From Chara braunii (taxonomy: Eukaryota; Plantae; Charophyceae): a DNA stretch of 64,000 bases. Positions 7,261 to 59,508 of the stretch are shown one piece after another. The notes under the pieces were generated by a model. The model worked only from the letters and a program-made list of their open reading frames with translations. It ran no database searches and was not told where the DNA came from. Positions within the stretch are counted from its first letter, which is position 1. Every line of letters begins with the position of its first letter. Position numbers and translations under genes: made by a program. The stretch is taken from assembly GCA_003427395.1 (NCBI GenBank), contig BFEA01000007.1, forward strand, positions 1,217,285-1,281,284, in the 5' to 3' direction.

Positions 7261-7342
<82 letters not shown>
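7261..7342. repeat. (CT)n microsatellite
   Basis: Read directly from the sequence. Confidence 0.95.
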
Positions 7343-7346
<4 letters not shown>

Positions 7347-13170: not shown

Positions 13171-13426
13171 TTCGCAACCCGCTAGGGGTGCGTTTTATGC
13201 CCCCCATAACATTTTTCGTCGTCGTTTGTTAGACGGTCGTTGGAAGGGTGGAAAAACAAGGCACGACAGTTTAGGGGGTGGTGGCATCTTATTTGAAACT
13301 GCAAGACCGGTAGCTGCTTGTGGGACAACACGGGTTTTGGTCGAAAAATAGAAACGGGGCCAAAGCAGCGGCGGGCGCACCCGTTGGCTCACTTTCGCAC
13401 CCGTTCCCTCTCGGTAAGTCAAATGT
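13171..13426 (-). repeat. ~255-bp repeat; inverted paralog of the sequence interrupted by the large Gypsy element (15928-16072 plus 30287-30400)
   Basis: Its reverse complement aligns to both flanks and reproduces the empty site GATGCCACCACCC[C/A]CTAAACTG. Confidence 0.85.

Positions 13427-13943: not shown

Positions 13944-14030
<87 letters not shown>
13944..14030. repeat. (CT)n(GT)n compound microsatellite
   Basis: Read directly from the sequence. Confidence 0.95.
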
Positions 14031-15218: not shown

Positions 15219-15293
<75 letters not shown>

Positions 15294-16072
15294 NNNNNNN
15301 NNNNNNNNNNNNNNNNNNNNNNNNNNNNNNNNNNNNNNNNNNNNNNNNNNNNNNNNNNNNNNNNNNTAGCCCCTCCCCCCTCCCTCTCTCTCTTTCTCTC
15401 TCTCACTCTCGGTCTCTCTCAGAGTCTCTCTCACTCTCTGTGTCTCTCTCACACTCGTAATTGACTTACCGTAAGGGCACGGGTGCGCAGCCCGTAGTTT
15501 GTTTGTCGATGCCCCTTGACGGGGTGTGAACGGTGGTGAGGCTCAGAGGCATTTGCTGGACCTGTTTTTTTGCAGGCCCAGTCCCCCACCAATAGTTCGG
15601 AGTTATCCATATTGGGTGAGTCTACTTTGATAGGGGACTCATATCACGCCTTGAAAAAAAGTTGGACTGTTGGAGATGATTCAGCGAAAAATAAATCAAT
15701 TGGAAAGTAAAGACACAGAAAACAAAAAGAACAGAGAGACACGGTTTTCAGTGCATTGCAATTGGCCATGGTCATCACCCTCACTTGTTCGTGTTTTTAG
15801 TCGTTGCCCATTCGGGATCGAAGTCGCTACTTGTCGTTGATATCGTGATCGTAAAAGTAGCGCATGCATCTGGTCAGGGTGAGGGCCGGGTGCAGTGAAC
15901 TGAAAACAGAGGGAAGAAGAAGAGAGACATTTGACTTATCGAGAGGGAACGGGTGCGAAAGCTAGGCAACGGGTGCGCCCGCCACTTCTTTGGCCCCATC
16001 TCGATTTTTCAACCAAAACCCGTGCGGTCCAATGGGCAGCTACCAGTCCTGCAGTTTCAAATAAGATGCCAC

Positions 16073-18766
16073 TGTGACGCCCAACCTCATGCCCAGCGCA
16101 ACTTCCTGATCGGAGTGGGATGGGGGCCTGGAAGTGCGAAAAAGGGGTGTGCCAAGGATTTTTGGGGATTTGGGGTGGAGTCCCAGGTCGGAACTTAGAT
16201 CTCCTGTGGCCAGTCTTAAGGGTAGGAGTGCAAGTGCCTTCTCAAGCTGGCTCAGAGTTGGGGCGATGATCGATCGTGCTGCCTGGGCCGGGGTGGGGTG
16301 TCATGGGCGTCTCTGTGGGAATGTTCGTACCGTTGCCGGCCGTCGCAAGTTTCGGGGTCCGACGAAGACGAGTTGGGTTCTCGTCGCTCGGTCCTGGGAT
16401 GGGCTCGTTATGCAACCCTCGCCTGTCGATGCTCGTCGGGCTGCCAACACTCCAAGCATGGCGGTCGGGGCCAGAACCGGGCTACGGAATCCCAGGGGAC
16501 CACGAGAAACCGGTGGTAAGGGAGGACGGTATAGTAGGGAGGGAAGTCAGTGGTGATGACAACAAAGCCTAGGGTTGGAAGATATTGCTGTTTTTGGCTG
16601 TCAGGATAATCGGGAATCCGTGGGTCTCGGTTGATTGCCAGCTGGAAGTCGCCCCTGCACAGTCGCTCGTTTTCATTCCGGCAGGGGTACTCAAGGTACC
16701 CGGGGTTCCGTAGGTGGCGATGTTGTCGGATCCGCTATCGGCGGATCTGTTCCCTCTCCCAATACGCTCGGTATTCGGGGTCCCTCAGGCTTTCGCGATC
16801 GGTGATCCAAAAAGGGGAATCTGTCGCCATATCTTGTTCACACACATCTTCCTACTGGGCGAGGTCGTAGCTGGCTTTCGCGGGCGCGCGTATAGATGGC
16901 AAGTCCGTGGACGGCTGTTATCTTATACGCACGTGCGCACTGCCCAGTTAGTCAGATCTTAAGACGTGCAAATAATCAAGGACGATCCACCCGCGTACCG
17001 GCTCAACCATGCAGCTAGTTCCCTCAGGCTATCAATCTGTTTCGTTCTGGACATTCGCACAGTATGCACACCCAATGGTCCCCGTGTGGCGTCGGGCCTT
17101 AACTTGTCCCGACCCGTACCGCGGATGAAGACTCCGTTATTTACGTCAAGATCTGTCGTGCTAAGCCCATTCGGGGTTGCGGGCTGGCCTCGCCGGTGCG
17201 CGTGTAAGTCGCGCTTATCAAATCGCGCTTACACGGGGACTCACGGGGTTGGTCCGTTGTGGATCGATCCATCAGTCAATCATCCATGCAAAAGAAGGTT
17301 TATGTGGTCATGCAATAATCTCTCAGTCATTCTTGTTCGAGCAAAAAACAGTTACATGGCCATCAGAGGGATATCTCATCGCCATCCAGACATACATCGA
17401 AGCACCACAACAATATCAAACTCCCTTCACCTACCAATCATCCGGGTGAGAATAGATCGACGCTGCGGGCGCGGGATGATTCAGGATTACACGCAAAACA
17501 TCACGTATTACAAGATCCAACAAATGCAAAACGAAAGAGGGAGGACAAAGATTGAGCTGTACATCACACGAAGCCGAAAGAAATGTCAAAATGCAAAACA
17601 AGGGCGTCTCGCCCGGAGCGAAAATTTTATATACAAGGACTGAGAAATGACAAAGAAGATTGCAATCCCACATCCGCCTATTTCCCCCCTCTCTCTCTCT
17701 AATGAGGGCAGTCCGTCGTCTCGCACCCACCCACGAAGTTGTCACCCCGCTTAGTCCGCATGCGCCCGTCAGGTTCGCTCGTGCGCCACAGTCCGTCGTG
17801 GCCTACAGGTTAACCCCGCACACTTGGCACCAGCTCGTCGGGTCGCCCAACTCCCACATCAACTCACCTCTTACTTTGCTCATTAGCCGATCCTTACTGA
17901 TCGCGCTAACCTCGAGCCTCCAAAAATTTTAAGAGAGCTATCTAATAGCGCCCGGCGAAATTTATAGCATGCATGCGTGCTCGAAGATGCGAGGTTGTAG
18001 GGATTGGAAAGAGGAGCAGAGAATGAAGTGCCTACACTTGGCATGGCCAGATCGCAGCGTGGGGGACGTAGCCACTCTCCACGCATCGACCTAGGCATGC
18101 AGCGCTCAGGCCAATCAGATGCAGCAAAAAGAAGGGGAGAAGGGCGGAAAAAAGGCGAGAGAACAAGAAGAAAGATACAGTTACAATGGCGCCCGCCCAA
18201 CGATTACAGTTGGATGCAAGACTATGGGCGCCGCTTAGTCAGAACTTCGCTCTCGCCGCAGGAAGATGCGAGCAAGAAAGAGGCGCCGCTCGACAAGAAA
18301 TTCAAAAAGTCCTAAATTCCTATCTGATCTCAAAATTGCAAATGAAAAAATCCGAAAAGACGAAAAAAAAGAGCAAAAAGAAATAAAAAAATTCCAAGAG
18401 ACCTCGGGGGCTCGTCCTTAGTTGAAAGGAAACTTTAAAAAGAAAAACCGAAAAGCTCCCGCACGATCATCGCGCCAAAAATCTCCGTTCCCTCCTTTTG
18501 CTCCCAGCAGAGCAAAAAAGAATCACCGTCAACCATTATTGATCGCACCAAACGGGGCGCGCACACTCAACCGTCTGTCCCGGGCCTGTCCCATCACCGC
18601 CGAAGGGGAAGGAGTGAAGCGAAGGAAAAGAAAGAAGCGAGGACACTAACGCAATTTACCCGTCGATCCCACCTCCCACAATTTGCCCATCCCTCCCATC
18701 TCAGGACCCCTCCGAGTCATTGTCATTGCACAGAAACTCGCGTGGCACAAAAAGTGGTTCGTCACA
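16073..18766 (-). repeat. 3' LTR of E1 (2694 bp), including an extra terminal segment at 16073-16083
   Basis: Colinear with 27610-30286. Confidence 0.95.
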
Positions 18767-18780
18767 TATGTGATGCCCAA
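18760..18780. other. Palindromic end-to-end junction CGTCACA-TA-TGTGATGCCCAA where the PPT should be
   Basis: TCACATATGTGA (18762-18773) is a perfect palindrome. 18769-18780 matches the element terminus 16073-16084 at 11 of 12 positions. Confidence 0.85.
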
Positions 18781-19068
18781 GGGGTTCCAATCTTGAGTAG
18801 GCTCCTGCTTGCTCGATGTTGCGACATGTGTCGATCTCTCTAATTGATCGACGATGCGGAACTCTCTACGTGCCACTTACCGTGCGATAATAGTGTGGAA
18901 GTCATCCAACGTGGCATACGCGGGCTCTATCCTACAAGTTTCTCGGGAAGGGCAATCTAACCAGGAAAGGAGGAGGTGGGGGGGGATCTTGCCAATTTAC
19001 ACGTGTCGTTACCACAGGATATGAATGTGGAATCATCCTGTTGACATGTCATTAGATCCGATGGTGCA

Positions 19069-19872
19069 CTAGTGACCCGCAGGGAGAGGATAAAGGAGCC
19101 GGTACATCGGGGGATCACTTGGGAGTAGGGGTAAGAAAGTCTCCATCCCCGCTACCGTCTCTGGCAGTTCTTGATATCTCACAATGCGATGTATGTGGGG
19201 GAATCGGCGACCACTATGGGGGAGAGACGTGAGATAGTCGAGATAGAGGGTCGGAAAGGTGTGGAGCAGGGCCGTGCGGAACTGATCATAGTCCACGCAC
19301 ACGGGGATAGTTCCCGTGATCATGCAGTAGACTTCGACCATGTTATGTCCCCGCCATGCGGCAATGAAGAGAAGAACGTGGAGGGAGAAAGAGGAGGAGG
19401 CGCATCTCGTGGTGGAATGCGGATACACCGTGACAGCGAGGCGAGTGGAGTAGAAGTGATGGAAGGTGGAAGTCGGGAAGGGAATACGAGGGAAGGAGAG
19501 TGGGGTATCGATCTGCCGGAGGGTCAGAAAATCAAGGGGGCGACGGGATAACGACCGGGGACGTAGCCCGATGCCCTGCATCGCCACATGTTCGAACTGA
19601 GGAACGGGGGGAAGGGGAGGGGGATTGGCTTCGTCACCTCCGCGCCGGCGCGCTCGAAGTCTCTGTAGGAGGGAGCTCATCCTCAATCGCGGGCGGCTCA
19701 GGATCTTTGGTCGGGTCATCTGGGATTGGCAAATTAGTGTCGCTGGAATGCTCCAAGGGTCGCGTCCCCGCCGCTATCTCTTCCCTCCTTGCGGCTGCTA
19801 CATGATCCTCTTCTCGAACTTCCGCCTGGTCGGCCTCTCCTCCCAAACTTTCCCACTTGGACTCCTCTCTTT

Positions 19873-19905
<33 letters not shown>

Positions 19906-21109
19906 CTTCTTCTTCTTCTTCTTCTTCTTCTTCTTCTTCTTCTTCACTCACCGCCCCCGGCTCTTCTTCGTTGTACTCGCTATAGCTTCCCTCTTCTTCA
20001 GAGGTCTCTTCCTCCTCATCCTCCTCTGCCGCTTCTTCCTCTACCGCTTCCTCCTCCGATGCCATTTGGGGCTGAAAGCAAAGGACATCGATTATCCACC
20101 GGGGGTTCAGGTACTCCGCTCGCGATGGGTAGCTACCTCTTCCCCAACGATCCTCCAGACAGGCCGACCATTGCAAGTACGGTGTTAAACTTGAACTCCG
20201 TGAAAGCACGTGCGGCGCCGGATTCTCGTCTCGATGTAAGATGATCTCGGTTGGAAGATTGTCGAGCAACTGAGCGAAGAGGACCAAGAGCTCCCACACG
20301 AACGTTTGCCGATGTCTTGGGTCTATTGTTCCGAGGCGAATCCGAGAAGGTCTCCCTCCACCTCCGACCTCCAGGCTTGGATAATAAGCAGCTCCACACC
20401 CTCACTCACGGCACGGTGCTCACGGTCCTGAGTCCATGTCAGCTTGATCCCGACTAGGCACAAAGAAAGGGTGAAGTAATTCTCACACCATATCTCCCAC
20501 TGCGATGGCTTGATGAGCGACACTGTAAGGGGCCGCACGCAGAAGGGGAGGCGGGGATGTAGGACTGACCGCCAGAAATTGGGAAAGAAAGAGGGGAGGG
20601 TGAAGGTAGAGAATTGGGAACGTTCATTGAGGGCGAGAGAAAGGGACGAGCGCAGGGAGAGCAACTGTCAGCTCGTGCCGGAGAGTGCGGATGTTGCCAG
20701 TGTCAACACTGTTGGTATTGGCGACGTTCTCCCCTCACCGCGCCAATAACTGGCTCCAAGCCTGCGCCAACTACTCGCCCCACTCCCTCAACGAGGTACG
20801 GATGGTCGTATGTGCTCTAGGATCCACCGTACTAAGATCCCCGCTGAAGAAGACAATTGTCGAAACGTGACTGATTCCCGGCGCCGAGAGTCGTCGATAA
20901 GCCGATGCTTCGGCCAGCACCTGCGTCTGGCTGTTGGGGACCACAAAGTGAAACTCCACCGCCGCGTGCACACCTGCAGTGCTGAAGAACTGCGCGAAAT
21001 TGAGAACGTCGGGGTTGATGCGCGGATGATGGACTTGCCGGATCGTTGAGATGTTCCCTCGTGGCGCCAACATACGTTCACTGAGGACCTGCTCCGTGGA
21101 AAAACTCAT
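19069..21109 (-). pseudogene. Additional ORF region of E1 between integrase and the 3' LTR (several disrupted ORFs, one with poly-Glu); function unknown
   Basis: Sense-strand ORF pieces 20771-21109, 20323-20664, 19634-20299 and 19069-19719 with protein-like composition. No domain recognised. Confidence 0.5.
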
Positions 21110-22782
21110 GGCGACGAGGATGGAGAAGATGAGTGGGGAGAAGAAGCGGAATGGGGATTGTCACTCTCCCACTCGGATTCCGAGATCGACCCTGTTGGGG
21201 AAGGGGGAGAAGAAGTTGAGAGATGGCGGAGGTAGGACACGTGGCGGACGATCGGGCGAGCCAATTGGCGGCCTGAGGCTTCGGGCACCAGTCGCACTGT
21301 GTTCACCCCGTTGGGACTGAGCTCGATCACGCGAAATCTCCCGAAGAATCGTGGCGCTAGCTTACCCTGGCGAGCACATTTCCTCACTTGCACCATGTCC
21401 CCTAATTTGTACTAGGGCCGTGGTCCTGGTTTCCGTTTCAGGCCTCGTAGCTACGGATTTGTCGTCCGTGGGCCAATTCAGTCATCCACTGTCGTTTCCA
21501 GGCCAACCTAGGAAGGGACCATTCCATTAATTCCAAGTGTCGCTTGGCCTTGTCCCGGGCCGTGGCCCTCGTGGGTCATCGACCCAAGGCAAATTCATCG
21601 TTAAGGCTTGGTATCGGGACACAATCAAGCTATTGGTGCGGAGCTGGAAGGGGCTCAGGCCTGTCGATTCGTGGGGCGTTCCTCGATGGACCGCCAGAAT
21701 ATATCGGGCCAAGGCCTCGTGTCCCTGGCCGCGATATTGTGTCGAAGGGCGGTCTTAATTGCTCGATTCGTGTTTTCTACTAGTCCGTTCGATTGCCACA
21801 TGTGAGGTGCGGCGGTACGAATGGTGACCCTATGTATGACCGGATTCCTCAAAACTTCTCCCCTAAACTCTGCCCTGTTATCCGTCAAAATTTCCTCGGT
21901 GTCTTGATGCATCCCGAGAAAACGGTTGACATACCGCGCGATTTCAGCCGCCTGTCGCGTTCAGCATGGATACGCCTCGATCCATTTGGAAAAATGATCC
22001 ACGAATACCAAAAAAATTGAATATTCGCAGCTATTCGGTCCAGGGGGCACCATTATATCGGTCATGTCCACGTTCGACTACTGTGGGCACTATTGATCTT
22101 GGCAGCTGAATCGGCGCCTTGTCAGCGGCACAGACCTGACAGCTTCGGACGATGAATTTGACATCGTCACGAATATTGGACCAATGCCATTCATTTTTGT
22201 CGATCGCCGTTTCAGTGATCCGGACGACAAAGTGAGCTGCAGTATCTTCGTGGGCTGACTTAACCCAGTCATACCTCATGAACGGGTGTGGTACAGTCAT
22301 CCAAATCCCACTACCATTCGTCTCCGTTTTTCCAACCGTCCCTCGTTCCATCGATAATCTCGAGCCCTTTCATTGGCCCTCCTCTGGTCTTCCCTAGTGA
22401 AGTCTCGGAGGGGGTTCCCTACTACGGTTGCTATCAGGGCGACATCAGTCCAAACCTCAGCCCTTCTAAACCTTTGAGTTTTTTCTAATCCTTCTGACAT
22501 GGTGTCGAGGAATCGAGCTTCGATCGGGATTTTATCGGTCGGACACAGGGGGCACAACCAAGGCTTATTGCTGCTTCGGTATTGGATACAAGCGCCAAGG
22601 GCTCTGGACACACACTGCCAATAATCTACCCATTCGACATACCCATCCTCACTAGGATGCATAGGGACCGAGTAGACCCGCGAGATCACTTTATAGAAAT
22701 AACAAAATTTGTTGGGTAAAGAGAGAAAAGACAAAGACGAGAGGGAAGAGAGAGGAGTGTTGGAGTTACCTTCGTCACCCAT
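21106..22782 (-). pseudogene. E1 DDE integrase with a ~150-aa N-terminal extension; frameshifted
   Basis: HHCC motif (AHEDTAAHF...CQVC), rve core (ILTDNRAEF...QSNGLVENTN) and GPY/F region (KLAPRFFGRFRVI). Confidence 0.88.
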
Positions 22783-24510
22783 CGCCACGTGCTTGTCCCA
22801 CGGTGCGTGGGAGAAATGCCACCTGTCCGTAACGGGGCCCGCTGTTGGCTCCGGTTTCTTCCACGGGATGATTTCTTCACCCTTGGCGACCTTCGTTGGA
22901 CGATGCAGTCGCGTCAACCCGTCCACGTTTTCGTGCCTTTCTGTCTTCCGATGGATGATGTCGAAATCGTATTCTTGTAGCTGCACCGCCCACCGTCCAA
23001 TCATGCCCGTGTAATTTGTGAACCTTTTGAGGGCCAATAGCGGCTCATGATCCATAACAAGGAAAAACTTATGTCCGTACAGATACAGATGGAAATGTTG
23101 GATTCCCCAAACCACCACGTAGCACTCTCCTTGCAAGGCCGAATCGTTCCTTCGTTCGTCTTGTACAGTACGGAAGGCGTACTCGATGACGTGCTCGCGT
23201 CTTTCGTTCCCTTTCTGTGCTAGAATATCGGAGATTGCCTCGGGCTGCCAGTCCGTAATAAGTATGAACTGCTTTGTTGGGTCCGACTGGATCAAAATCG
23301 GTGTTGTAGCCAGGGCCTCCTTGAGAGTGACAAAGGCCCGTTCGCACTCTGCGTCCCAACTGAGGGGCTGGTCCTTCCGTAGCAGGTTTGTTAAAGGTCG
23401 TGCGGTAGCGGCGAACCCTTTAATAAATCGTCGATAATACGAAGCCAGTCCGAGGAACGATCGAACCTGCGTCAGCGACATGGGAGTCGGGGCGTCTCGA
23501 ACAGCCTCGACCTTCCTCGAATCGGGCCTCAAACCAGCCTGAGTCAACACGTATCCCAGGAACGAAATCTCTGGGAGAAAGAGCTCGCTTTTCTCCAACA
23601 CGATCTTGAATCCGGCATCCCTCAAGGCTCTTAGTGTCCACTCGATGTGCTGCGCGTGCCCGTGGTAGGATTCCCAATAAACCAGGATATCGTCCATGTA
23701 CACAATGACGCAGAAATTGATCATCCCCTGCGTCAGTCGAGTCTTGTTGACAAAATTATGAAATGTCACATTCATCGCTCGCTGGAACGTGGCCAGTGCG
23801 TTGAAAATCCCCATCGGGCATCGAACCCACTGCCACAAGCCTTCAAACAGAACAAAGGCCGTCTTAGGCCGATCCTCCTCCTTGACCAGAATATGGTGAA
23901 ACCCGTGACAGATATCGAACTTACTGAAGTAGTTAGCACACCCAATCGCATCCAACAATCCAGGGAATGGGGTATACATCTTTAATCGTGATATCATTCA
24001 GTTTTCGATAATCGATGAAAATACGGACTGACCCATTCTTCTTCGGTACGAGAACTACTGGGAACGACCACGGTCCCGTAGCCGGCTCAATCCATCCGTT
24101 AGCCTCGAACTCTCTAATCTATTGTAAGGCCGTTTTCCGTTCAGCGAGGGAATATCGATACGGTTTGCAGTGGATTGGGGGGTGATTTCCAGTCTGAATC
24201 TCGTGTTGGATGATAAGTGACAGTTCAATGTTTGTGTCTGTTACGCTAACTGCTCCCTGATATTCCCTTAGGATTTCCGCAATCAAGCGGTGTATGGCAT
24301 CGGGTACGTATTGTGGCACGTGTAACTCGTAAGGGTGTCTGTGGATAACGACCGCCACATGTTTCCTGCCCATCATCTTCGCGTTCAGTGGAGGCGGGGA
24401 GGAGATAAAGGAGTTATTCGACCGCCACGAGAACACGGTGGCGACCATTTGAGCTTCCTCCTCTCGAATGGCCACGTATTCTTCAGGGGTTATCCCATCC
24501 TCGACTTCAA
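22775..24510 (-). pseudogene. E1 reverse transcriptase and RNase H
   Basis: VYMDDILV, FSKFDICHGFHHI, SFLGLASYYRRFI and RNase H motifs (ITDW...ECY...DHEPL). Confidence 0.95.
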
Positions 24511-24511
24511 T

Positions 24512-24745
24512 ATTGTTTTTTGTCATTTTCTAAACAAAATTAAAAAATATATATATAAAAAAACAGAATTTTTTTTTTGTCATTTTTTATCATGAGATAT
24601 ATGGTCCCCGAGATGACCTGTGTTTTTTTTTAATGAATTTCTGTTTTTTGCAGGGAAATGAGGTGTTTAAAAAAAAATGCAGATGCAAAATTTAAAAACA
24701 AATAAACAAAAAAAGGGTTTGATTGATTGATTGATTGATTGATTG

Positions 24746-24810
<65 letters not shown>

Positions 24811-24960
24811 AATCAGACTCCTCTTCCACACTTTACATGCATGCAAACAGGTGCGCAGCAAACCGGCAACATGCGCCCACTCAGAACTTAGAGATATGGT
24901 ACCGAGAACACAGTTCAGATTCAAGTTCACTTCGAATGGCTATGTGTGTGTGTGTGTGTG

Positions 24961-25014
<54 letters not shown>

Positions 25015-25372
25015 NNNNNNNNNNNNNNNNNNNNNNNNNNNNNNNNNNNNNNNNNNNNNNNNNNNNNNNNNNNNNNNNNNNNNNNNNNNNNNNNNNNNNN
25101 NNNNNNNNNNNNNNNNNNNNNNNNNNNNNNNNNNNNNNNNNNNNNNNNNNNNNNNNNNNNNNNNNNNNNNNNNNNNNNNNNNNNNNNTGTGTGATGTGTG
25201 TGTGTGTGTGTGTGTGTGTGAGCGCGTGTGGGTGTGTGTGTGTGCGCGACCCTCCCCGCGAGCCGGGCAGGTCCCGCGCGACGGCAACTGCGACCCTCCC
25301 TGCGGGCGCGGGCGCGGGGGCTGCGCGGCTCGCGGGGAGGGTCCCAGTTGCGCGAGCGGGCGTGAGAGCGAG

Positions 25373-25436
<64 letters not shown>

Positions 25437-25488
25437 GTCACGGTGTGTGTGCGTGTGCCGGGGGAAGGGGAGGGAGGACCCTTCCCCC

Positions 25489-25530
<42 letters not shown>

Positions 25531-25828
25531 CAATCAATCAATCAATCAGTCAACAAAAAAACAATCTGTCAATCGATTTTTTTTTTTTTTTCTATTTTGT
25601 TTTTTTTTCACACATCAAAAAACGCCCCCCCCAAATTTTTGATTTTTTTTTTTCTTCCGCATATGCCGATAGCGGCCGACGTGCGCAGGCCGAGCGCGCG
25701 CCCCCGCATGGGCGTGGCTCGGCCGCGTGCAGACTCAGCCGCGAGGCCTACGCCGCGCGCCTGCGGCCTAGGAGGTCGGCCGCGGATTAGGCCGCAGGAT
25801 CCGCAGCCGACGATGCCACATAGGCTTT
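24512..25828. other. Microsatellite-rich foreign segment with an N gap, replacing the protease region of E1
   Basis: (TTGA)n, (GT)n, (GA)n and (CAAT)n tracts plus a GC-rich CGGCCG-repeat tail. The ~850-bp protease segment present in E2 is missing here. Confidence 0.75.
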
Positions 25829-27546
25829 AGGGTTTTCCCCAAACTTCCACGTCGCATTCTGTGGATTTCCATGGAAGAGCCCGGATTCGTATAAACTGAT
25901 CGTCTTTCTGGATTAGGACCATTCGGATAGGCTCTGAAGTGCTCGGTATGTCAGATTTTGGCTCCTTGGTGGGGGTCTTTGCTTTCGCCGTCGTTAGTCT
26001 GGCAACTTGAAGGGCGAACCGGTTTCGGTTCGCCTTGCAATGTTGTAGCATCCGATCGTTAGCTTGTTCAGAAATGGACAACAGGTGTCCGATTGGTAGG
26101 GGAATACGGTTGTCTAACGCTCGGACGATGTCTAGAACGTCGATTTCTCCTGTGACGAACACGGGTCCTCCCGTTTCCATCTCGTTCAAGGAGGATCTCC
26201 ATTTCGATACTTCGTTATGGTCGGGGGCAGGCTGAATGGCCCCGATCATACCGAGGCCTAGATATCCTAGTGATAGGTATTGATCAAGCGGGATAAGTTC
26301 GGCTGCTTCCTTCGTAGCCCCCGACGGGTTCACACCATTGTCTGTTTCTTCCGTGGCCACTCGACCAAGTTCATTAGTGATCGGGGCGGCCGCCACTTGC
26401 GCGGCTCCGATTCTGGGTTGTGCAGGTCGGTGGAGGCAGTTCCGAGCTATATGTCCTAGCTGGTGACACGTGTAACAAACACTTGTGTTGGTTGTTGCCC
26501 CTTCTATTGCTGGGGCAGGGGCTGCTCTTGGCATTCCTGGGGCTGCCCTAACAGTAATGGGTCGCGTCGACCTCATCATCGATGCGATTTGTGCGTTGTG
26601 CTCACGCTGCTTTTTCTTAGTACTTTCTTTCCTACATCAAATTAAATAACGTTCGAGTTAATTCTAATATGGCATTGGATTCGTTAGGCTTTGCGAGGGC
26701 GCTTGGGGGAGGCGATGGTGTGGTCGCGGTGGGTAGTCCTGCGACTGTATCGGGTACCGGCCTTTTGGCTGCGACCTATTCCTAGGTAGGTGATGCGTCC
26801 GAAGATGAAATCCATATTTTCGAATTTGTTCTAAAGCGCTGCCATCTCGGTTTTCGCCCGGGCCAGCTCCGAGGAGTCTCCTTCCTTGGCGTGATCTTCG
26901 CTTTCTAAGAAGCTGGCGGCGAACTTTCTTTCCATCTCCTCGACTCCATCCATAATCTGCTGCATGGTATGGTTGATGGGGGAGAAGTTGCCCTCATCGC
27001 CCGACTTCGAAGCCCATGGATAAACAAGTCTCTACCTACCTTTTCGTCTCTCTCGGACTTGACAAACAACCTATAGAACCTACTACGATATTCTGTAACG
27101 GATTCAAGCGGTTTCTTTACACGATCTCTGATCATAAAGAACGTCTCTTCGGGGTGGATGTAGTCGGACCGATTTAGGAAGTCTCTCTCCAAGGTCGGGA
27201 GATCGATACAGGCATAGGTACTAAACCAATGGTGCGCATCTCCTCCCAGTCGGGCGGGGATGTTGATCCGGGCTTCATCGTTATCGTACTTTTGAGCCCG
27301 TAAGGTGGCCAGCCATGCCCCGACCAGGTGATGCGTAGGGTCGAAGAAAAACAAATCAAGGGGAGCCGCAGGTGCGCGAACTCGGATGGGTGGTGCGGGG
27401 ACAGGTGCCCCGCCCAACTGTACATTAACGTTTGGCGCTTGATTGACTTTCATATTGACGACCTGTCTTCCGATCGATTGACTCCTAAGTACAATAGGAT
27501 CGCGTCAAGGCGCGTTCCGCTGTCTAGGCCGTCTTCTATTCGCCAG
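25827..27546 (-). pseudogene. E1 gag (capsid-like region and CCHC zinc knuckle), disrupted
   Basis: CYTCHQLGHIARNC; homologous to E2 gag. Confidence 0.88.
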
Positions 27547-27596
27547 ATCGTCTGAACGTCTTTCCTGCTTACTTCCCCGTGAGTTCGCCACGTGTC

Positions 27597-27609
27597 GGCT
27601 CCGATACCA
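27597..27609 (-). promoter_or_regulatory. Primer binding site TGGTATCGGAGCC (tRNA-iMet type)
   Basis: One difference (G:U compatible) from the canonical TGGTATCAGAGCC; directly adjacent to the 5' LTR. Confidence 0.88.
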
Positions 27610-30286
27610 ACCTCACGCCCAACACGACCTCCTGATCGGAGTGGGATGGGGGCCCGGAAGTGCGAAAAAGGGGTGTGCCAAGGATTTTTGGGGATTTGGG
27701 GTGGAGTCCCATGTCGGAACTGAGATCTCCTGTGGCAAGTCTCAGGGGTAGGAGTGCAAGTGTCTTCTGGCTCAAAGTTGGGGCGATGATCGATCGTGCT
27801 GCTTGGGCCGGGGTGCGGTGTCACGGGCGTCTCTGTGGGAGTGTTCGTACCGCTGCCGGCCGTCGCAAGTTTCGGGGCGCGATGAAGACGAGCTGGGTTC
27901 TCGTCGCTCGGTCCTGGGATGGGCTCGTTGCGCAACCCTCGCCTGCCAATGCTCGTCGGGCCGCCGACACTCTGAGCACGGCGGTCGGGGCCAGAACCGG
28001 GCTACGAAATTGCAGGGGACCACGAGTAACCGGTGGAAAGGGAGGACGGTATAGTATGGAGGGAAGTGAGTGGTGATCATAATGGCAACGAAGCTTGGGG
28101 TTAGAAGATATTTATGGTTTCGGCTATCGGGATAATCAGGAATCCATGGGTCTCGGTTGATTGCCAGCTGGAAGTCGCCCCTGCACAGTCGCTAGTTTTC
28201 AGTCCGGCAAGGGTACTCACGGTACCCGGGGTTCCGTAGGTGGCGATGTTGTCGGATCCACTGCCGACAGATCTGTTCCCTCTCCCAATACGCTCGGTAT
28301 TCGGGGTCCCTCAGGCTTGCACGATCAGTGATCCAGAAAGGGGAATCTGTCGCCATATCTCGTTCACACAAATCTTCCTACGGGGCGAGGTGGTAGCTGG
28401 TTTTTGCAAGTGCGTGTACAAATGGCAAGTCCGTGGATGACTGCTGTCTTATATGAGCATGCGCACTGGCGAGTTAGTCAGATCTTAAAACGCGCAAATA
28501 ATCAAGGACGATCCGCCCGCGTACCGGCTCAACCATGCAGCTAGTTCCCTCAGGCTATCAATCTGTTCCGTTCTGGACATTCGCACAGTATGCACACCCA
28601 GTGGTTCCCGTGTGACGTCCGGCCTTAACTTGTCCCGACCCGTACCGCGGATGAAGACTCCGTTATTTACGTCGAGATCTGTCGTGCTACGCCCATTCGG
28701 GGTTGAGGGCCAGCCTCGCGGGTGCGAGTGTAAGTCACGCTCGTCAGATCGTGCTTACACGGGGACTCGCGGGGTTGGTCCGTTGTGGATCGATCCATCA
28801 GCCAATCATCCATGCAAAAGAAGGTTTATGTGGTCATGCAATAGTCTCTCAGCCATTCTTGTTCGAGCGAAAAACAGTAACGTGGCCATCAGAGGGATAT
28901 CTCATCGTCATCCAAACATACATCGAAGCACCACAACAATATGAAACTCCCTTCACCTACCAATCATCCGGGTGAGAATAGATCGGCGCTGCGGGTGCGG
29001 AATGATTAAGGATTGCACGCAAAACATTACGTATTACAAGATCCAACAAATGCAAAACGAAAGAGGGAGGACAGAGATCGAGCCGTACATCACACGAAGC
29101 CGAAAGAAATGTCAAAATGCAAAACAAGGGCGTCTCGCCCGGAGCCAAAAATTTATATACAAGGACTGAGAAAGGACAAAGAATATTGCAATCCCACCTC
29201 CGCCTATTTCCCCTCTCTCTCTCTCTCTGATGCGGACAGTCCGTCATCTCGCACCCACCCACGAAGTTGTCACCCCGCTTAGTCCGCATGTGCCCGTCAG
29301 GTTCGCCCGTGCGCCACAGTCCGCCGTGGCCTACACGCCAACCCCGCGCACTTGGCACCAGCTCGTTGGGTCGCCCAACTCCCACATCAACTCACCTCTT
29401 ACTTTGCTCATTAGCCGACCCTCACTGATCGCGCTAACCTCGAGCTTCCAAAATTTTTAAGAGAGCTAGCTAATCGCGCCGAAGAAATTTATAACATGCA
29501 TGCGTGCGTGAAGATGGGAGGTTGCAGGGATTGGAAAGAGGCGCAGAGAAGGAAGTGCCTACGCTTGGCATGGCCAGATCGCCGCGTGGGGGATGTAGCC
29601 ACTCTCCACGCATCGATCTAGGCATGCAGCGTTCAGGCCAAGCAGATGCAGCAAAAAGAAGGGGAGACGGGCGGGAAGAAGGCGAGGGAACAAGAAGAAT
29701 GATACAGTTACAATGGCGCCCGCCCAACTACTACAGTTGCATGCAAGATTATGGGCGCCACTTAGTCAGAACTTCGTTCCCGCCGCAGGAAGATGCGTGC
29801 AAGAAATAGGCGCCGCTCGACAAGAAATTCAAAAAGTCCTAAATTCCTATTTGAGCTCAAAATTGCAACAGAAAAATTCCGACGAGACGGAAAAAAAGAG
29901 CAAAAAGAAATAAAAAAATTATGAGCGCCCTCGGGGGCTCGTCCTTAGTTGAAAGGAAAATTTAAAAAGAAAAAATGAAAAGCTCCCGCACGATCATCGC
30001 GCCAAAAATCTCCGTTCCCTCCTTTTACTCCCAGCAGAGCAAGAAAGAACCATCGTCAACCGTTATAGATCGCGCCCAACGGGGCGCGCACACTCAACCG
30101 TCTGTCCCGGGCCTGTCCCATCACCGCTGAAGGGGAAGGAGCGAAGCGAAGGAAAAGAAAGAAGCAAGGACACTGACGCCATTTACCGCCGATCCCACCT
30201 CCCGCAATTTGCCCATCCCTCCCATCTCAGGACGCCTCATTGTCATCGCGCAGAAAGTCGCGCGGCACAGAAAGTGGTTCGTCACA
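27610..30286 (-). repeat. 5' LTR of E1 (2677 bp); ends ...GGGCGTGAGGT with no terminal CA
   Basis: Colinear with the 3' LTR up to GAGGTTGG. Confidence 0.93.
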
Positions 30287-30418
30287 CCACCACCCACTAA
30301 ACTGCCATGCCTTTCTTTTCCAGCCTTCCAACGACCCTATAACGAACGATGACGAAAAATGTTCTCATGGGCATAAAAAGCACCCTTGATGGGCTGCGAT
30401 CAATAAATGGAACAAAAC

Positions 30419-32054: not shown

Positions 32055-32835
32055 CCCCCTCCCCCGGAACATAACTTGTATGAGTTGTATTCGAGTTTCC
32101 ATAACATTAGGGCGGTTCTGATAGACCCGGGTATACGTTGTGTTCGAATAAAAAGAAGTCTGTACGTCGTTTTCGCTTACAACGTGTAATTGTAAGTGGA
32201 GGGGGAAGATGCCCGATAATATTCATCATTCATATATATTCATATATTCCATTCAATAGGCTTCCCTCCGGTCCTATCTGATACCCCCCTCTCCCGAAAA
32301 GCGCACTCGACGACAAGTGGCGGGGAAATGATGGAAAGTGAAGGCCTCGTCTTTTCACTCGTCGCTTCCGCCGGTGCCTCCCACCACCCACGCAAAACAA
32401 AAAACAAAAAAGAGGGAAAAAGCGTTCAAAAAGGGCAAAAAAAAGAGAGGCTCAACCGCACGCCCAAGCCTTCTCCTGGCGACTCCGCCGTCCTACGCAA
32501 CTGCGAAGTGCCACCGTAGGCGTATCTAGTAGCTCTCGTGTCTCTTTGCGGGCGTCTATATATTCAGCCAGAGGGACGGTGGTGATCGTTGAAACGCAAG
32601 AGGCGATGCGAACTGTCAAGAGCTATCTGAAGAACTGATGAAGCGATATTATAAACTGTAGAGGTTTTGTGCGTTCTGAAGCAGTGAAGTGATACGACTT
32701 CGTATAAACTGAGTGTGCGAAAACGAGGGTTGAGCGAACAAAAGACGAACGAGAGCTTCGGAGAGCTTGAAGTGTGTCTCGATTGTGTTGTGTAGAGGGA
32801 GGAGGCTTTGTAGAGACTCGTTCGCGATCGCGAGT

Positions 32836-51168: not shown

Positions 51169-51223
<55 letters not shown>

Positions 51224-57339: not shown

Positions 57340-57514
57340 TTCGGAATCGTATGGATCCGAATTTAGGTCTGTATTTCAACAGTTCGTGGATCATCCATGA
57401 CTGAAGAGTGACCGTTGGTTTCAACCAACGAGAAAAAACAAAAAAAATAAAAAAAAAACGAAGCGTTTGTTGGCGCACGCCGCACTTAGGGGGAAGGCGA
57501 AGTGGAAGGTGCCC

Positions 57515-59495
57515 TGTGACGAACCGATTTCTGTTCCTCGCGATCTTCCGCGCGAGGACAATGAGGGGTCCTAAGACAGGAAGGTTGGGCCAATTATGGG
57601 AGATCGAGATCGAAGAGAAAATTGCATCGGTGTCCTCGCTTCTTCGTCTTTTTACGTCGCTTCTTTTTGGACGACTGGGTTCAGGGATGGGCAAGTCCCA
57701 GGATGATCGGTTGACTAGCGCGGCGACAGAGGCGCGATTAATAATGTTGGACGTCGCTTCTTTCTTGCTCTATTGTCGGGTTCTTGGCGCGGTGATCGCG
57801 CGGGATGTTTTGCTTCGTTTTGAATTTCTTTTTGAATCTTGTCGAGCCCTCGATGACTCTCGGAATTTCGGACTTCCTTTTCGGATCTGTGCTTTTTGCA
57901 TTTTTGCAGTAGTAGGAATTTAGGAATTTAGAAATTCGGGACTTCTTTTGTCGCGCGTTGCTTTTGCTTGCACGCTTATTTTTGTGGCTGCAGCGGAACT
58001 ATGATTAATCGACGCCTTTAATCTTGTGTGTAACTGTAATTTTTGAGCAGGCGCCATTATAACTGTATCTTTCTTCTTGGGCTTCGTCTTTCCCACCCTC
58101 TCTTTTCCATTTGCTGTGACTGGTTAGCCGCGGACTGCATGCTAGGATCAATGAGTGGAGAGTGGCTTCGTCCCCTACGCCGCGGTCTGGTCAAGCAGAA
58201 CGTAGGCAATCCCTTCACTTCTCTCTTCCAAGTCCTAGCAATTCTGTGTCCTTTGCGCAGGCATGCACGCTATAAATCTCAACTGCACAATTAGATAACT
58301 CTCTTAACTAGTCACCGAAAGGTCGGGGTAGTGCGATCACTGAGGGTCGGCTCATGAGCGAAGTAAGAGGTGAGTTGAAGTGGGAGTTGGGCGACCCGAC
58401 GAGCTGGTGCCGAATGTGCGAGATTGACGTGTGGGGCTACGACGGACTGTAGCGCGCAGGCAAATCCGACGGGCACAGAAGGGTTAAGTGGGGTGATAAC
58501 TTCGTGGGTTGGTGCGTGACGACGTCTTTTGCGTAAGCGTCAGCTGACAGACTCGGGTGTGAGCGAACACCTCGTGTGGATACGTGTAAGCGCGATCTGA
58601 ATTGCGCGGCCTACACGTGTCCACGCGCCGCGAGTCGCGATCGTTTACAAGCCTGGCACCCCCAATACCGGGATAGGTGAGGAATTTTCCTCCTTTCAAT
58701 CACCAGAGCTGGCAGGAATTTCCGACACCATATCTGGAGATCCCCCTGTCAGTCAGAAGCGTGCGGAAGGATTCCACCATACTGCAATGACAAGATGGCG
58801 TACACATGGGACCCAGGGTACTTAGAGCAGTGGGAGGGGGAATATCTTAGACCGAGTTATCCAGAATTTCCCTGTCTAACCGAAAACCGACTGTGTGCCT
58901 GAAACTTTCACCGTGCCATAACCAGCGACCCAAGGTGCCCCCGACTACCCGACCACTTATAACACGCAATATTTCATATCCCTCGGCTTCGTCGTCATCG
59001 CCACAAATTTCCCTCGCTTCCACATCCTCCTCCCATACCACCAGCTCGCAGTGGTTCCGTGGAATTCCATAGTCCCGTATTAGCCCCACACGCCTTGCAG
59101 AAATTGTAGACGACGCGGCAACCGTCGAACTTCTGGAATTACGGAACCTACTCATAATATGCGACGACAATCGACACGCGTCTGCCCCCAGAGGTCCGAC
59201 TCATAGGAAACGCGACCCTCACGAACGGACCTCTAACCGAACCGCCGGGTCGGATGACCCAGAATGCACTGCGCATGTCATCTGCCTTATGCTACACGAC
59301 ATCGACTGCCATCAGACCGGAAGCAGCCCGTCCCTTAGCCTTATTGCACCTATGCCCCCGAAACCGCGTCACAGGAGATCTCAGTTCTGACCTGGGACTC
59401 CACCCCTACTTTCCCAAAAATCCTTGGCACACCCATTTTCGCACTTCCAGGCTCATATCCCACTCCGAACAGGAAGTCGCTACCGGGCGTGAGGT
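57515..59495 (+). repeat. 5' LTR of E2 (~1.98 kb); ends GGGCGTGAGGT
   Basis: The first ~1 kb and last ~130 bp align with the E1 LTR; the middle has diverged. Confidence 0.85.
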
Positions 59496-59508
59496 TGGTA
59501 TCGGAGCC
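59496..59508 (+). promoter_or_regulatory. PBS TGGTATCGGAGCC (tRNA-iMet type)
   Basis: Same sequence as the E1 PBS. Confidence 0.88.

Follow-up and report, generated by a model that had tools for sequence, protein, structure and literature searches.

How can a retrotransposon that integrates by means of a DDE integrase renew, at each round of replication, an integrase end that is absent from the long terminal repeat (LTR) from which it should be copied? This question is raised by an element, here called E1, that lies on the minus strand of a 64,000-nucleotide stretch of Chara braunii DNA (contig BFEA01000007.1, positions 1,217,285 to 1,281,284), the whole of which is referred to below as the window. 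E1 is a Ty3/Gypsy element, old and defective, with many frameshifts in its internal region. Read in element sense, it consists of a target-site duplication (TSD), an LTR body (A), the primer-binding site (PBS), the internal region, a short motif (pre-B1) followed by an internal copy of a terminal segment (B1), the dinucleotide TA, a second LTR body, the terminal copy of the segment (B2) and the second TSD (Table 1).

The LTR bodies of E1 were found to be 91.2% identical over 2694 aligned positions when the 5' LTR was compared with the 3' LTR by BLAST. As a preliminary description of the locus had it, the alignment ends short of the TSD and is followed by a further segment, B, which gives the 3' LTR 11 bases more than the 5' LTR; the 5' LTR body, again as described, runs straight into the PBS at 27610/27609 and carries no CA. 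The second copy of the end segment is indeed fused to the LTR start as B-TA-TGTGACG, reading CATCACA-TA-TGTGACG in E1, a 16-bp palindrome save for one CpG-type change, and B1 differs from B2 by a single C>T-type change. The segment had been taken to be 12 nt long; it is 11 nt, the additional T at 18780 being private to E1. The pre-B1/B1 boundary at 18780 is spanned by RNA reads, and no polypurine tract abuts the 3' LTR, the sequence upstream of which is, in its family form, AACCCCC-B-TA.

The proposal that the 4-bp TSD is confirmed by an empty-site paralog also holds. The paralog has a single GTGG at 13281-13284, with homologues of both E1 flanks on either side, and RNA reads from an uninterrupted paralog cross the insertion point at 16072 straight into the sequence following 30290. 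Since neither the paralog nor these reads contain B, B2 came in with the element, and the idea of B as a piece of target sequence was rejected. In the DNA contigs, which were drawn from two runs of Chara braunii, approximately 100 contigs per run diverge into unrelated flanks at 16073. E1 is itself nested in another repeat, its flanks (15950-16068 and 30291-30330) having a contig depth of about 4,600 against 10-20 for single-copy sequence, and the RNA reads across the empty site mean that uninterrupted copies of this host repeat are transcribed. A second element, E2, contributes only its 5' half to the window, its 3' end lying beyond it; the same CA-less end that had been noted for it at 59485-59508 was recovered, with GGGCGTGAGGT/TGGTATCGGAGCC at 59495/59496.

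To learn whether the layout is shared by a family, ten Chara braunii loci around reverse transcriptase (RT) genes of graded similarity to E1 were compared, which gave a set of 12 elements (E1, E2, L001-L006, L008, L009 plus, L009 minus and L010) in four families and on ten scaffolds, these being the window and nine BFEA01 records, with RT identity to E1 ranging from 86% down to about 51%. In all 12 the LTR body abuts the PBS directly with no CA, and wherever the 3' half can be read, B-TA-A is found inside the element and A-B at its terminus, terminal B being present in 11 copies (E1 and ten others). The two LTRs are thus unequal by 11 nt in every copy: the 5' LTR ends in GAGGT, and only the 3' LTR has the CA-ending B. 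The spacer is TA in eight of the nine readable copies and GA in one decayed copy, and CGTCACA-TA-TGTGACG is a perfect 16-bp palindrome in L002, L003, L006, L008, L009 and L010. In 363 kb of Chara DNA, what comes after the LTR-body end is always either the PBS (12 cases) or B (11 cases), a 13-mer with one mismatch at 32465 of the window being expected by chance and set aside. The perfect 4-bp TSDs of E1, L001, L002, L008, L009 plus and L010 are all different, and the integrations were therefore independent. With 12 elements on ten scaffolds, in different flanks and with different TSDs, mis-assembly, nesting and private deletion are excluded as the origin of the layout. The expectation that it would not be unique to E1, and that no CA-ending 5' LTR with a normal polypurine tract would turn up, was borne out in the eleven further copies and four families, and on these comparisons the A-internal-B-A-B layout is a property of the whole clade. 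One copy departs from it in part: in L009 minus (L009:45970-46080) the pre-B1/B1/TA segment is missing, leaving GCTTGCTTA/TGTGACG after a 27-nt deletion between TA repeats, and terminal B is kept, so that its palindrome was likely lost after insertion. This copy has no TSD and its two LTRs may come from different insertions.

Table 1. Features of E1, E2 and the surrounding window, and boundaries of the further copies (sequences in element sense unless the plus strand is named; RT, RT identity to E1; lower-case letters, additional bases at the A/B2 joint or changed bases)
Feature	Positions in window	Strand	Sequence or remark
Empty-site paralog of E1 insertion site	13171-13426	-	
TSD, 3' side of E1	16069-16072	-	CCAC on plus strand, GTGG in element sense; matches 30287-30290
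B2, terminal 11 nt of 3' LTR	16073-16083	-	TGGGCGTCACA; TGTGACGCCCA on plus strand (reverse complement); CA-ending integrase end
3' LTR body A	16084-18766	-	start TGTGACGAACC, end GGGCATGAGGT; from BLAST against 5' LTR
TA spacer, palindrome centre	18767-18768	-	
B1, internal copy of end segment	18769-18779	-	TGGGCATCACA; TGTGATGCCCA on plus strand
Pre-B1 motif	18780-18790	-	TTGGAACCCCT; family form AACCCCC
Short purine run	18802-18813	-	AGCAAGCAGGAG; 3' end 34-35 nt upstream of LTR start
Internal region of E1	18780-27596	-	
Integrase core	21658-22077	-	Pfam rve
Integrase zinc finger	22031-22351	-	Pfam Integrase_H2C2
RT/RNase H	22297-23997	-	Pfam RVT_1, RT_RNaseH
Assembly gap	25015-25187	.	in (CA)n tract of microsatellite block
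CCHC knuckle	25827-26579	-	Pfam zf-CCHC
gag	26905-27453	-	Pfam Retrotrans_gag, frame translations
PBS, tRNA-iMet type	27597-27609	-	TGGTATCGGAGCC; abuts LTR body directly
5' LTR body A	27610-30286	-	start TGTGACGAACC, end GGGCGTGAGGT; without B, without CA
TSD, 5' side of E1	30287-30290	-	CCAC on plus strand
E2 5' LTR body	57515-59495	+	related family, about 75% DNA identity to E1; starts TGTGACGAACC, ends GGGCGTGAGGT; flank GCCC at 57511-57514
E2 PBS	59496-59508	+	TGGTATCGGAGCC directly after GGGCGTGAGGT
L001			RT 86%; A/PBS GAGGT/TGGTATCGGAGCC; internal CCCCC-TGGGCGCGTCACA-TA-TGTGACG; A/B2 GAGGT-TGGGCGTCACA; TSD GTAG/GTAG
L002			RT 84%; A/PBS GAGGT/TGGTATCGGAGCC; internal CCCCC-TGGGCGTCACA-TA; B2 TGGGCGTCACg (lower case, base change); TSD CCGT/CCGT
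L003			RT 80%; A/PBS GAGGT/TGGTATCGGAGCC; internal CCCCC-TGGGCGTCACA-TA; B2 TGGGCGTCACA; 5' LTR start not recovered, locus gapped
L010			RT 84%; A/PBS GAGGT/TGGTATCGGAGCC; internal CCCCC-TGGGCGTCACA-TA; A/B2 T-a-GGGCGTCACA; TSD AGCC/AGCC
L006			RT 69%; A/PBS GAGGT/TGGTATCGGAGCC; internal CCACC-TGGGCGTCACA-TA; B2 TGGGCGTCACA; flanks GCCC/GGCT
L009 minus strand			A/PBS GAGGT/TGGTATCGGAGCC; B1 segment gone, 27-nt deletion; A/B2 GAGGT-tt-TGGGCGTCgCA; no TSD match
L004			RT about 60%; A/PBS GAGGT/TGGTATCAGAG; internal CCCCC-TGCCCATCAaA-gA-TGTGATAAGC; B2 TGCGCATCACA; 5' LTR truncated
L005			RT 62%; A/PBS GAGGT/TGaTATCAGAGC; internal junction in gap; B2 TGCGTATCACA; flanks AGCA/AGCC
L008			RT 51%; A/PBS GAGGT/TGGTATCGGAGCC; internal CCCCC-TGCGCGTCACA-TA-TGTGACG; A/B2 GAGGT-tccc-TGCGCGTCACA; TSD TCAG/TCAG
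L009 plus strand			RT 52%; A/PBS GAGGT/TGGTATCGGAGCC; internal CCCCC-TGCGCGTCACA-TA-TGTGACG; B2 TGCGCGTCACA; TSD CTCG/CTCG

The comparison between families also bears on where the terminal segment comes from. B reads TGGGCGTCACA in two families, TGCGCGTCACA in the third and TGCGYATCACA in the fourth; within a family the internal and the terminal copy are the same, and between families they differ. In the fourth family the LTR starts with TGTGATA rather than TGTGACG and B is changed alongside it, and because the changes occur on both sides the 7-bp terminal inverted repeat and the palindrome are kept. As B co-varies with the LTR start and matches its own internal copy, it appears to be an integrase-end sequence copied from internal B and not a copy of a tRNA. 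The replicated repeat had been proposed to be B-TA-A, and that part of the proposal in which terminal B is copied from internal B gains support both from the identity of B1 and B2 within families and from insertions at the joint between A and B2. Extra bases are present exactly at this joint in three of 11 copies (tccc in L008, tt in L009 minus and a in L010), compared with no indels at the joint itself in 12 A/PBS and nine B-TA-A junctions, B1 of L001 having a CG duplication within it. The additional ccc of L008 are the bases that precede its own B1, and the extra base of L010 does not stem from a damaged end, since the TSD of this copy is perfect. This contrast, new here, between a length-variable A/B joint and invariant other junctions indicates that A and B would be joined afresh in each replication cycle, by a jump or by ligation, as inheritance of the end as a block would not leave such variation at the one junction where it is seen.

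A possible relic of the process was noted at the left end of L008 (L008:12100-12200, 26440-26480), where the TSD TCAG is followed by C(C)TG and then AACTACC, as expected if an unprocessed CCCCC-TG...B-TA-TGTGACG-AACTACC had lost its palindrome by an 18-nt deletion; in this single case the end may be what is left of an extended cDNA left end.

Several short motifs surround these junctions. GGGCGTGAGGT at the LTR-body end is invariant in all four families, and AACCCCC is conserved directly before B1 in all four, making the pre-B1 motif a candidate plus-strand start signal. Each family also has a purine run (GCAGGAG, GGGAGA or AAGGAGA) that stops 34-35 nt short of the LTR start. The earlier statement that no polypurine tract lies upstream of the 3' LTR thus stands for an abutting tract, but this run of conserved position is, in E1, a possible displaced polypurine tract. 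B and the PBS share TGG in two families and only TG in the other two. The 'shared TTGG' at which the cDNA ends had been suggested to join is a mutation specific to E1, created by the private base at 18780 of the plus strand, at which about 95% of the family's contig depth has the other base (A>G). The PBS is TGGTATCGGAGCC in three families and the standard plant tRNA-iMet site TGGTATCAGAG in the fourth (L004:9449, L005:6695), so that Chara has either two initiator tRNA variants or one PBS that pairs by G-U wobble. No tRNA genes were found by ARAGORN in the window or the loci, and the identity of the primer is therefore deduced from the PBS only. Conservation across the four families was lacking for four further candidates, which were dropped: base pairing between a tRNA T-arm and the pre-B1 motif; the heptamer TGGGCGT, which occurs in both the LTR-body end and B and might have served as a homology for strand transfer; a longer inverted repeat, AACCAC/AACCTCAC; and a hairpin AGCAAGC-AGGA-GCTTGCT upstream of B1.

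In the strong-stop model of reverse transcription, the U5 at the 5' end of the RNA is the template for the U5 of each new LTR, and copying begins at the base beside the tRNA primer. Since the 5' LTR of these elements has no B and transcription starts inside that LTR, the RNA would have no B beside the PBS, and the right end made by the canonical route would be ...GGGCGTGAGGT, perhaps with one tRNA base, and would offer no CA to integrase. The argument made in the preliminary description, that a terminal B missing from the 5' U5 is beyond the reach of canonical replication, is therefore sound in its logic. Read-through of the 3' LTR was rejected as a source, as the minus strand starts at the primer and copies nothing 3' of it. 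From the layout, the sole B in the genomic RNA is B1, contiguous with TA and U3 as pre-B1(AACCCCC)-B-TA-U3, and any route from B1 to B2 must accordingly join the LTR-body end to B without a continuous template. To judge from the layout, an extra joining step must be needed for each new copy of these DDE-integrase elements.

From the layout, its conservation with co-variation, the 4-bp TSDs, the encoded DDE integrase and the imprecise A/B joint of some copies, we infer a series of steps in which such joining could occur. tRNA-iMet would prime the minus strand directly at the LTR-body end, and the plus strand would start not at the LTR start but at the boundary between the C-run and B, or a few bases upstream, so that the duplicated unit would be B-TA-A. 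The full-length cDNA would then be B-TA-A-PBS-internal-B-TA-A, with an extra B-TA on the left and a right end, ...GAGGT, of no use to integrase. This right end would be joined to the B-bearing left end, either by an end-to-end template jump of RT over 0-3 nt of overlap (TG or TGG) or by ligation, and the result would be a full junction of the LTR-LTR type, A-B-TA-A, with TA separating the two opposed integrase ends. Integrase would cut after CA on both strands of CA/TA/TG, leaving recessed CA-OH 3' ends with 2-nt overhangs, and the integrated product would be A-PBS-internal-B-TA-A-B with a 4-bp TSD. Retroviral integrases have been shown to cut palindromic LTR-LTR junctions internally (PMC1905944, PMC1180852, PMC4372172), and the proposal that the ends are joined and the CA/TA/TG palindrome opened by integrase would fit the data. 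For the account as a whole, in which the U5-side end B lies outside the duplicated repeat, the cDNA ends are joined and integrase opens the palindrome, we see the chances as evenly balanced. Its strictest form, in which an end-to-end junction, be it a closed two-LTR-type circle or the equivalent made by a jump, would be obligatory and would be opened by the DDE integrase at the hard-wired CA/TA/TG, is offered only tentatively and is rather doubtful.

A number of observations weigh against this account. Neither the A-B-TA-A junction, in tandem or otherwise, nor a permuted element was seen in the 363 kb of Chara sequence; the copies examined are all old, with LTR pairs 91-97% identical; and RNA-seq coverage over E1 is low and falls on both strands, most reads being less than 95% alike. 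It is a C-run and not purines that lies just upstream of B, and a plus strand started at the purine run would separate the LTR body from B by about 22 additional bases; no such bases were observed. The overlap of 2-3 nt is weak for a templated jump. Furthermore, if either palindrome of a closed two-LTR circle were cut at random, permuted copies (A-B-TA-A-PBS...) should arise, and there are none among the 12 elements; cutting would thus have to be confined to the complete junction by some feature of it, presumably the conserved LTR-body end that adjoins B.

The layout and the joint fit a closed circle, an end-to-end jump of RT and a splint alike. In the last of these no circle is formed: integrase would process the extended left end at CA/TA and so set free a short piece of the bottom strand, complementary to B-TA; the top strand of the right end would copy this piece to become A-B-TA, and integrase would trim the two extra bases, with an integrated product identical to that of end joining. 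The 2-nt TA spacer would then be a normal processing overhang, junctional extras such as ccc would be allowed if the left end starts a few bases early, and no choice between two palindromes would be needed, which fits the lack of permuted copies. However, a free piece of 13 nt would have to support priming through 0-3 nt of base pairing, and the scheme is without precedent; we consider it improbable. A weaker rival is primer translocation of the hepadnavirus kind, for which there is an established precedent in the 11-nt repeat used for strand translocation, DR1/DR2. The minus strand would start on internal B, pause at the C-run and move to the 5' LTR-body end, hence beginning with the complement of B, and extras derived from the C-run, as in L008, would be expected. 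But there is no primer site downstream of B1, and the tRNA-type PBS at the LTR-body end, whose junction does not vary in any of the 12 elements, speaks for ordinary priming by tRNA there, leaving translocation a long shot. It might also be supposed that terminal B is the copy of a second primer, a tRNA or another RNA, kept at the right end and not of internal B, as in two families B begins with TGG like the PBS and its complement ends in CCA. In the other two, however, B begins with TGC and the implied tRNA would start with C, B changes with the LTR start as a fixed host tRNA would not, and an identical B stands inside each element, so that a second primer is very hard to credit. Finally, the view that the layout is not replicative but reflects a rearrangement or defect (mis-assembly, private deletion, nested or tandem insertion) spread by genomic duplication could appeal to the degraded state of E1 and its assembly gap, but is practically discounted by 12 elements on ten scaffolds with different flanks, perfect 4-bp TSDs and four families reaching to about 51% RT identity, by the compensatory changes between B and the LTR start, and by a depth that implies thousands of copies.

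With regard to known systems, the Chara elements resemble canonical Ty3/Gypsy elements (Metaviridae; Ty3, plant chromoviruses) in having gag with CCHC followed by RT, RNase H and DDE integrase, a tRNA-iMet-type PBS, long direct repeats starting with TG, integrated ends TG...CA and a 4-bp TSD. Unlike them, they have a 5' LTR without a CA-ending U5 terminus, LTRs that differ by 11 nt in every copy, no polypurine tract abutting U3, and one internal copy of the terminus, joined to the LTR start in a 16-bp palindrome. The clade is thus Ty3/Gypsy by gene content, PBS, TSD and integrated termini, and lacks identical TG...CA LTRs and an abutting polypurine tract. In hepadnaviruses (DR1/DR2) and caulimoviruses, short repeats of about 11 nt or a terminal redundancy direct strand translocation and circularisation, and caulimoviruses are also primed by tRNA-iMet. 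These viruses differ in having no integrase, LTRs or TSD, and their repeats guide primers and carry no integrase end. PAT, Ngaro and DIRS, the last with an internal complementary region, are of the tyrosine-recombinase type (PMC7192593, PMC4157794). The split direct repeats of PAT and Ngaro are likewise arranged as A1-internal-B1-A2-B2, with an internal B-A junction that must template a terminus not present contiguously in the RNA; those elements, however, have a tyrosine recombinase, no TSD and a long B, in contrast to the DDE integrase, TSDs and 11-nt B with TA spacer of the Chara clade. The palindrome also recalls the ...CA-NN-TG... junction of retroviral two-LTR circles, which integrase cuts internally (PMC1180852, PMC1905944, PMC4372172), in cells for prototype foamy virus (PFV) and in vitro and after inhibitor wash-out for human immunodeficiency virus (HIV) type 1. 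In retroviruses this junction is confined to circles that are by-products, and neither LTR lacks its end, whereas in Chara half of it is hard-wired and the 5' LTR is without the end, so that a junction step would be obligatory. A precisely placed, conserved inverted repeat is also found across the internal/3' LTR boundary of Sirevirus elements (Ty1/copia), with a fixed 2-nt spacer before TG (PMC2829016); unlike the Chara repeat, it has its arms on either side of a true polypurine tract, neither arm being a copy of the U5 terminus, and no LTR is incomplete. In a full-text search of the literature no description of an A-internal-B-A-B layout in integrase-bearing elements was found, nor anything on the ends of Chara LTR elements, and no paper pairs Chara braunii with 'primer binding site'.

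That E1 is a Gypsy element with a DDE integrase rather than a tyrosine-recombinase element, as first proposed, was confirmed by the rve and H2C2 domains, by the 4-bp TSDs and by the failure of Pfam to match any tyrosine recombinase domain in the open reading frames (ORFs) scanned, which were those of at least 100-120 aa. Retrotrans_gag, zf-CCHC, RVT_1, RT_RNaseH, Integrase_H2C2 and rve matches follow the same order in E1 and L002. Comparison of the protease region (E1 25835 to 24490 with L002 9665 to 10532, the internal region being compared with L001 as well) showed that, where intact relatives encode the protease, E1 has about 1.3 kb of microsatellites at 24490-25835, made up of (CT)n, (CA)n and (TCAA)n, with the assembly gap inside them; the gap is more than 2 kb from every boundary at issue and leaves the four boundaries unaffected. 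Similar microsatellite tracts recur in the window at 7261-7346, 13972-14030, 15219-15293 and 51171-51223. Downstream of the integrase core E1 has about 2.3 kb without a recognised domain, and between integrase and B1 about 2-3 kb of ORF fragments without a Pfam match were seen in the window (18781-21100), in L002 (L002:13343-16280) and in L009 (L009:20900-24040), with a long acidic, E-rich tract in E1 at about 19700-20000.

Summed contig depth was approximately 306,000 at the LTR-body end and 130,000 at the pre-B1/B1 boundary, against 10-20 for single-copy sequence, which suggests thousands of copies of both motifs; an element with two LTR ends and a single B1 would give a ratio of roughly 2:1, as is seen. 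Those LTR blocks that are strongly conserved across families are few and short (16064-16177 and 17660-18229 of the window), have a depth of 40,000-230,000 compared with less than 2,000 for most of the 2.7-kb LTR, and may be cis-acting signals such as a promoter, R or the primer-adjacent region. No sites at which many molecules begin or end were reported in the RNA-seq runs. With the RT/RNase H ORF of E1, hundreds of proteins of Chara braunii are matched at 59-86% identity, and there is no other close match; in a protein library clustered at 50%, an RT identity of about 50% is followed by a drop to about 42% (Closterium) and 41% (an arachnid). The nearest relative outside Chara, the Closterium protein at 42% RT identity, lies at L007:7600-15450 of Closterium sp. 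NIES-54 in an element nested in a copia-type element, with only a 98-bp direct repeat, without TG/CA ends, and no usable boundaries. A metagenome scan gave no match to the 22-nt B-TA-A junction.

According to the textbook scheme, two strand transfers make the LTRs identical and the primer sites define the integrase ends, a scheme that cannot rebuild one end of these Chara elements. Nonetheless, in the 2-Gb genome of this alga the clade has apparently reached thousands of copies, the candidates for the extra step being a joining of cDNA ends, a non-homologous jump of RT or a splint. For annotation the layout means that LTR finders requiring TG...CA at both LTRs together with a polypurine tract beside U3 will place the boundaries wrongly in what is a major repeat fraction of charophyte genomes. 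The clade links the split repeats of recombinase retroelements with integrase elements, and it provides a natural test of the question, known from foamy viruses and the two-LTR circles of HIV, of whether integrase can make productive use of LTR-LTR junctions. If the obligatory junction should prove true, the Chara elements would be an example from nature of integration that normally follows the circle-junction route, long since abandoned for retroviruses.

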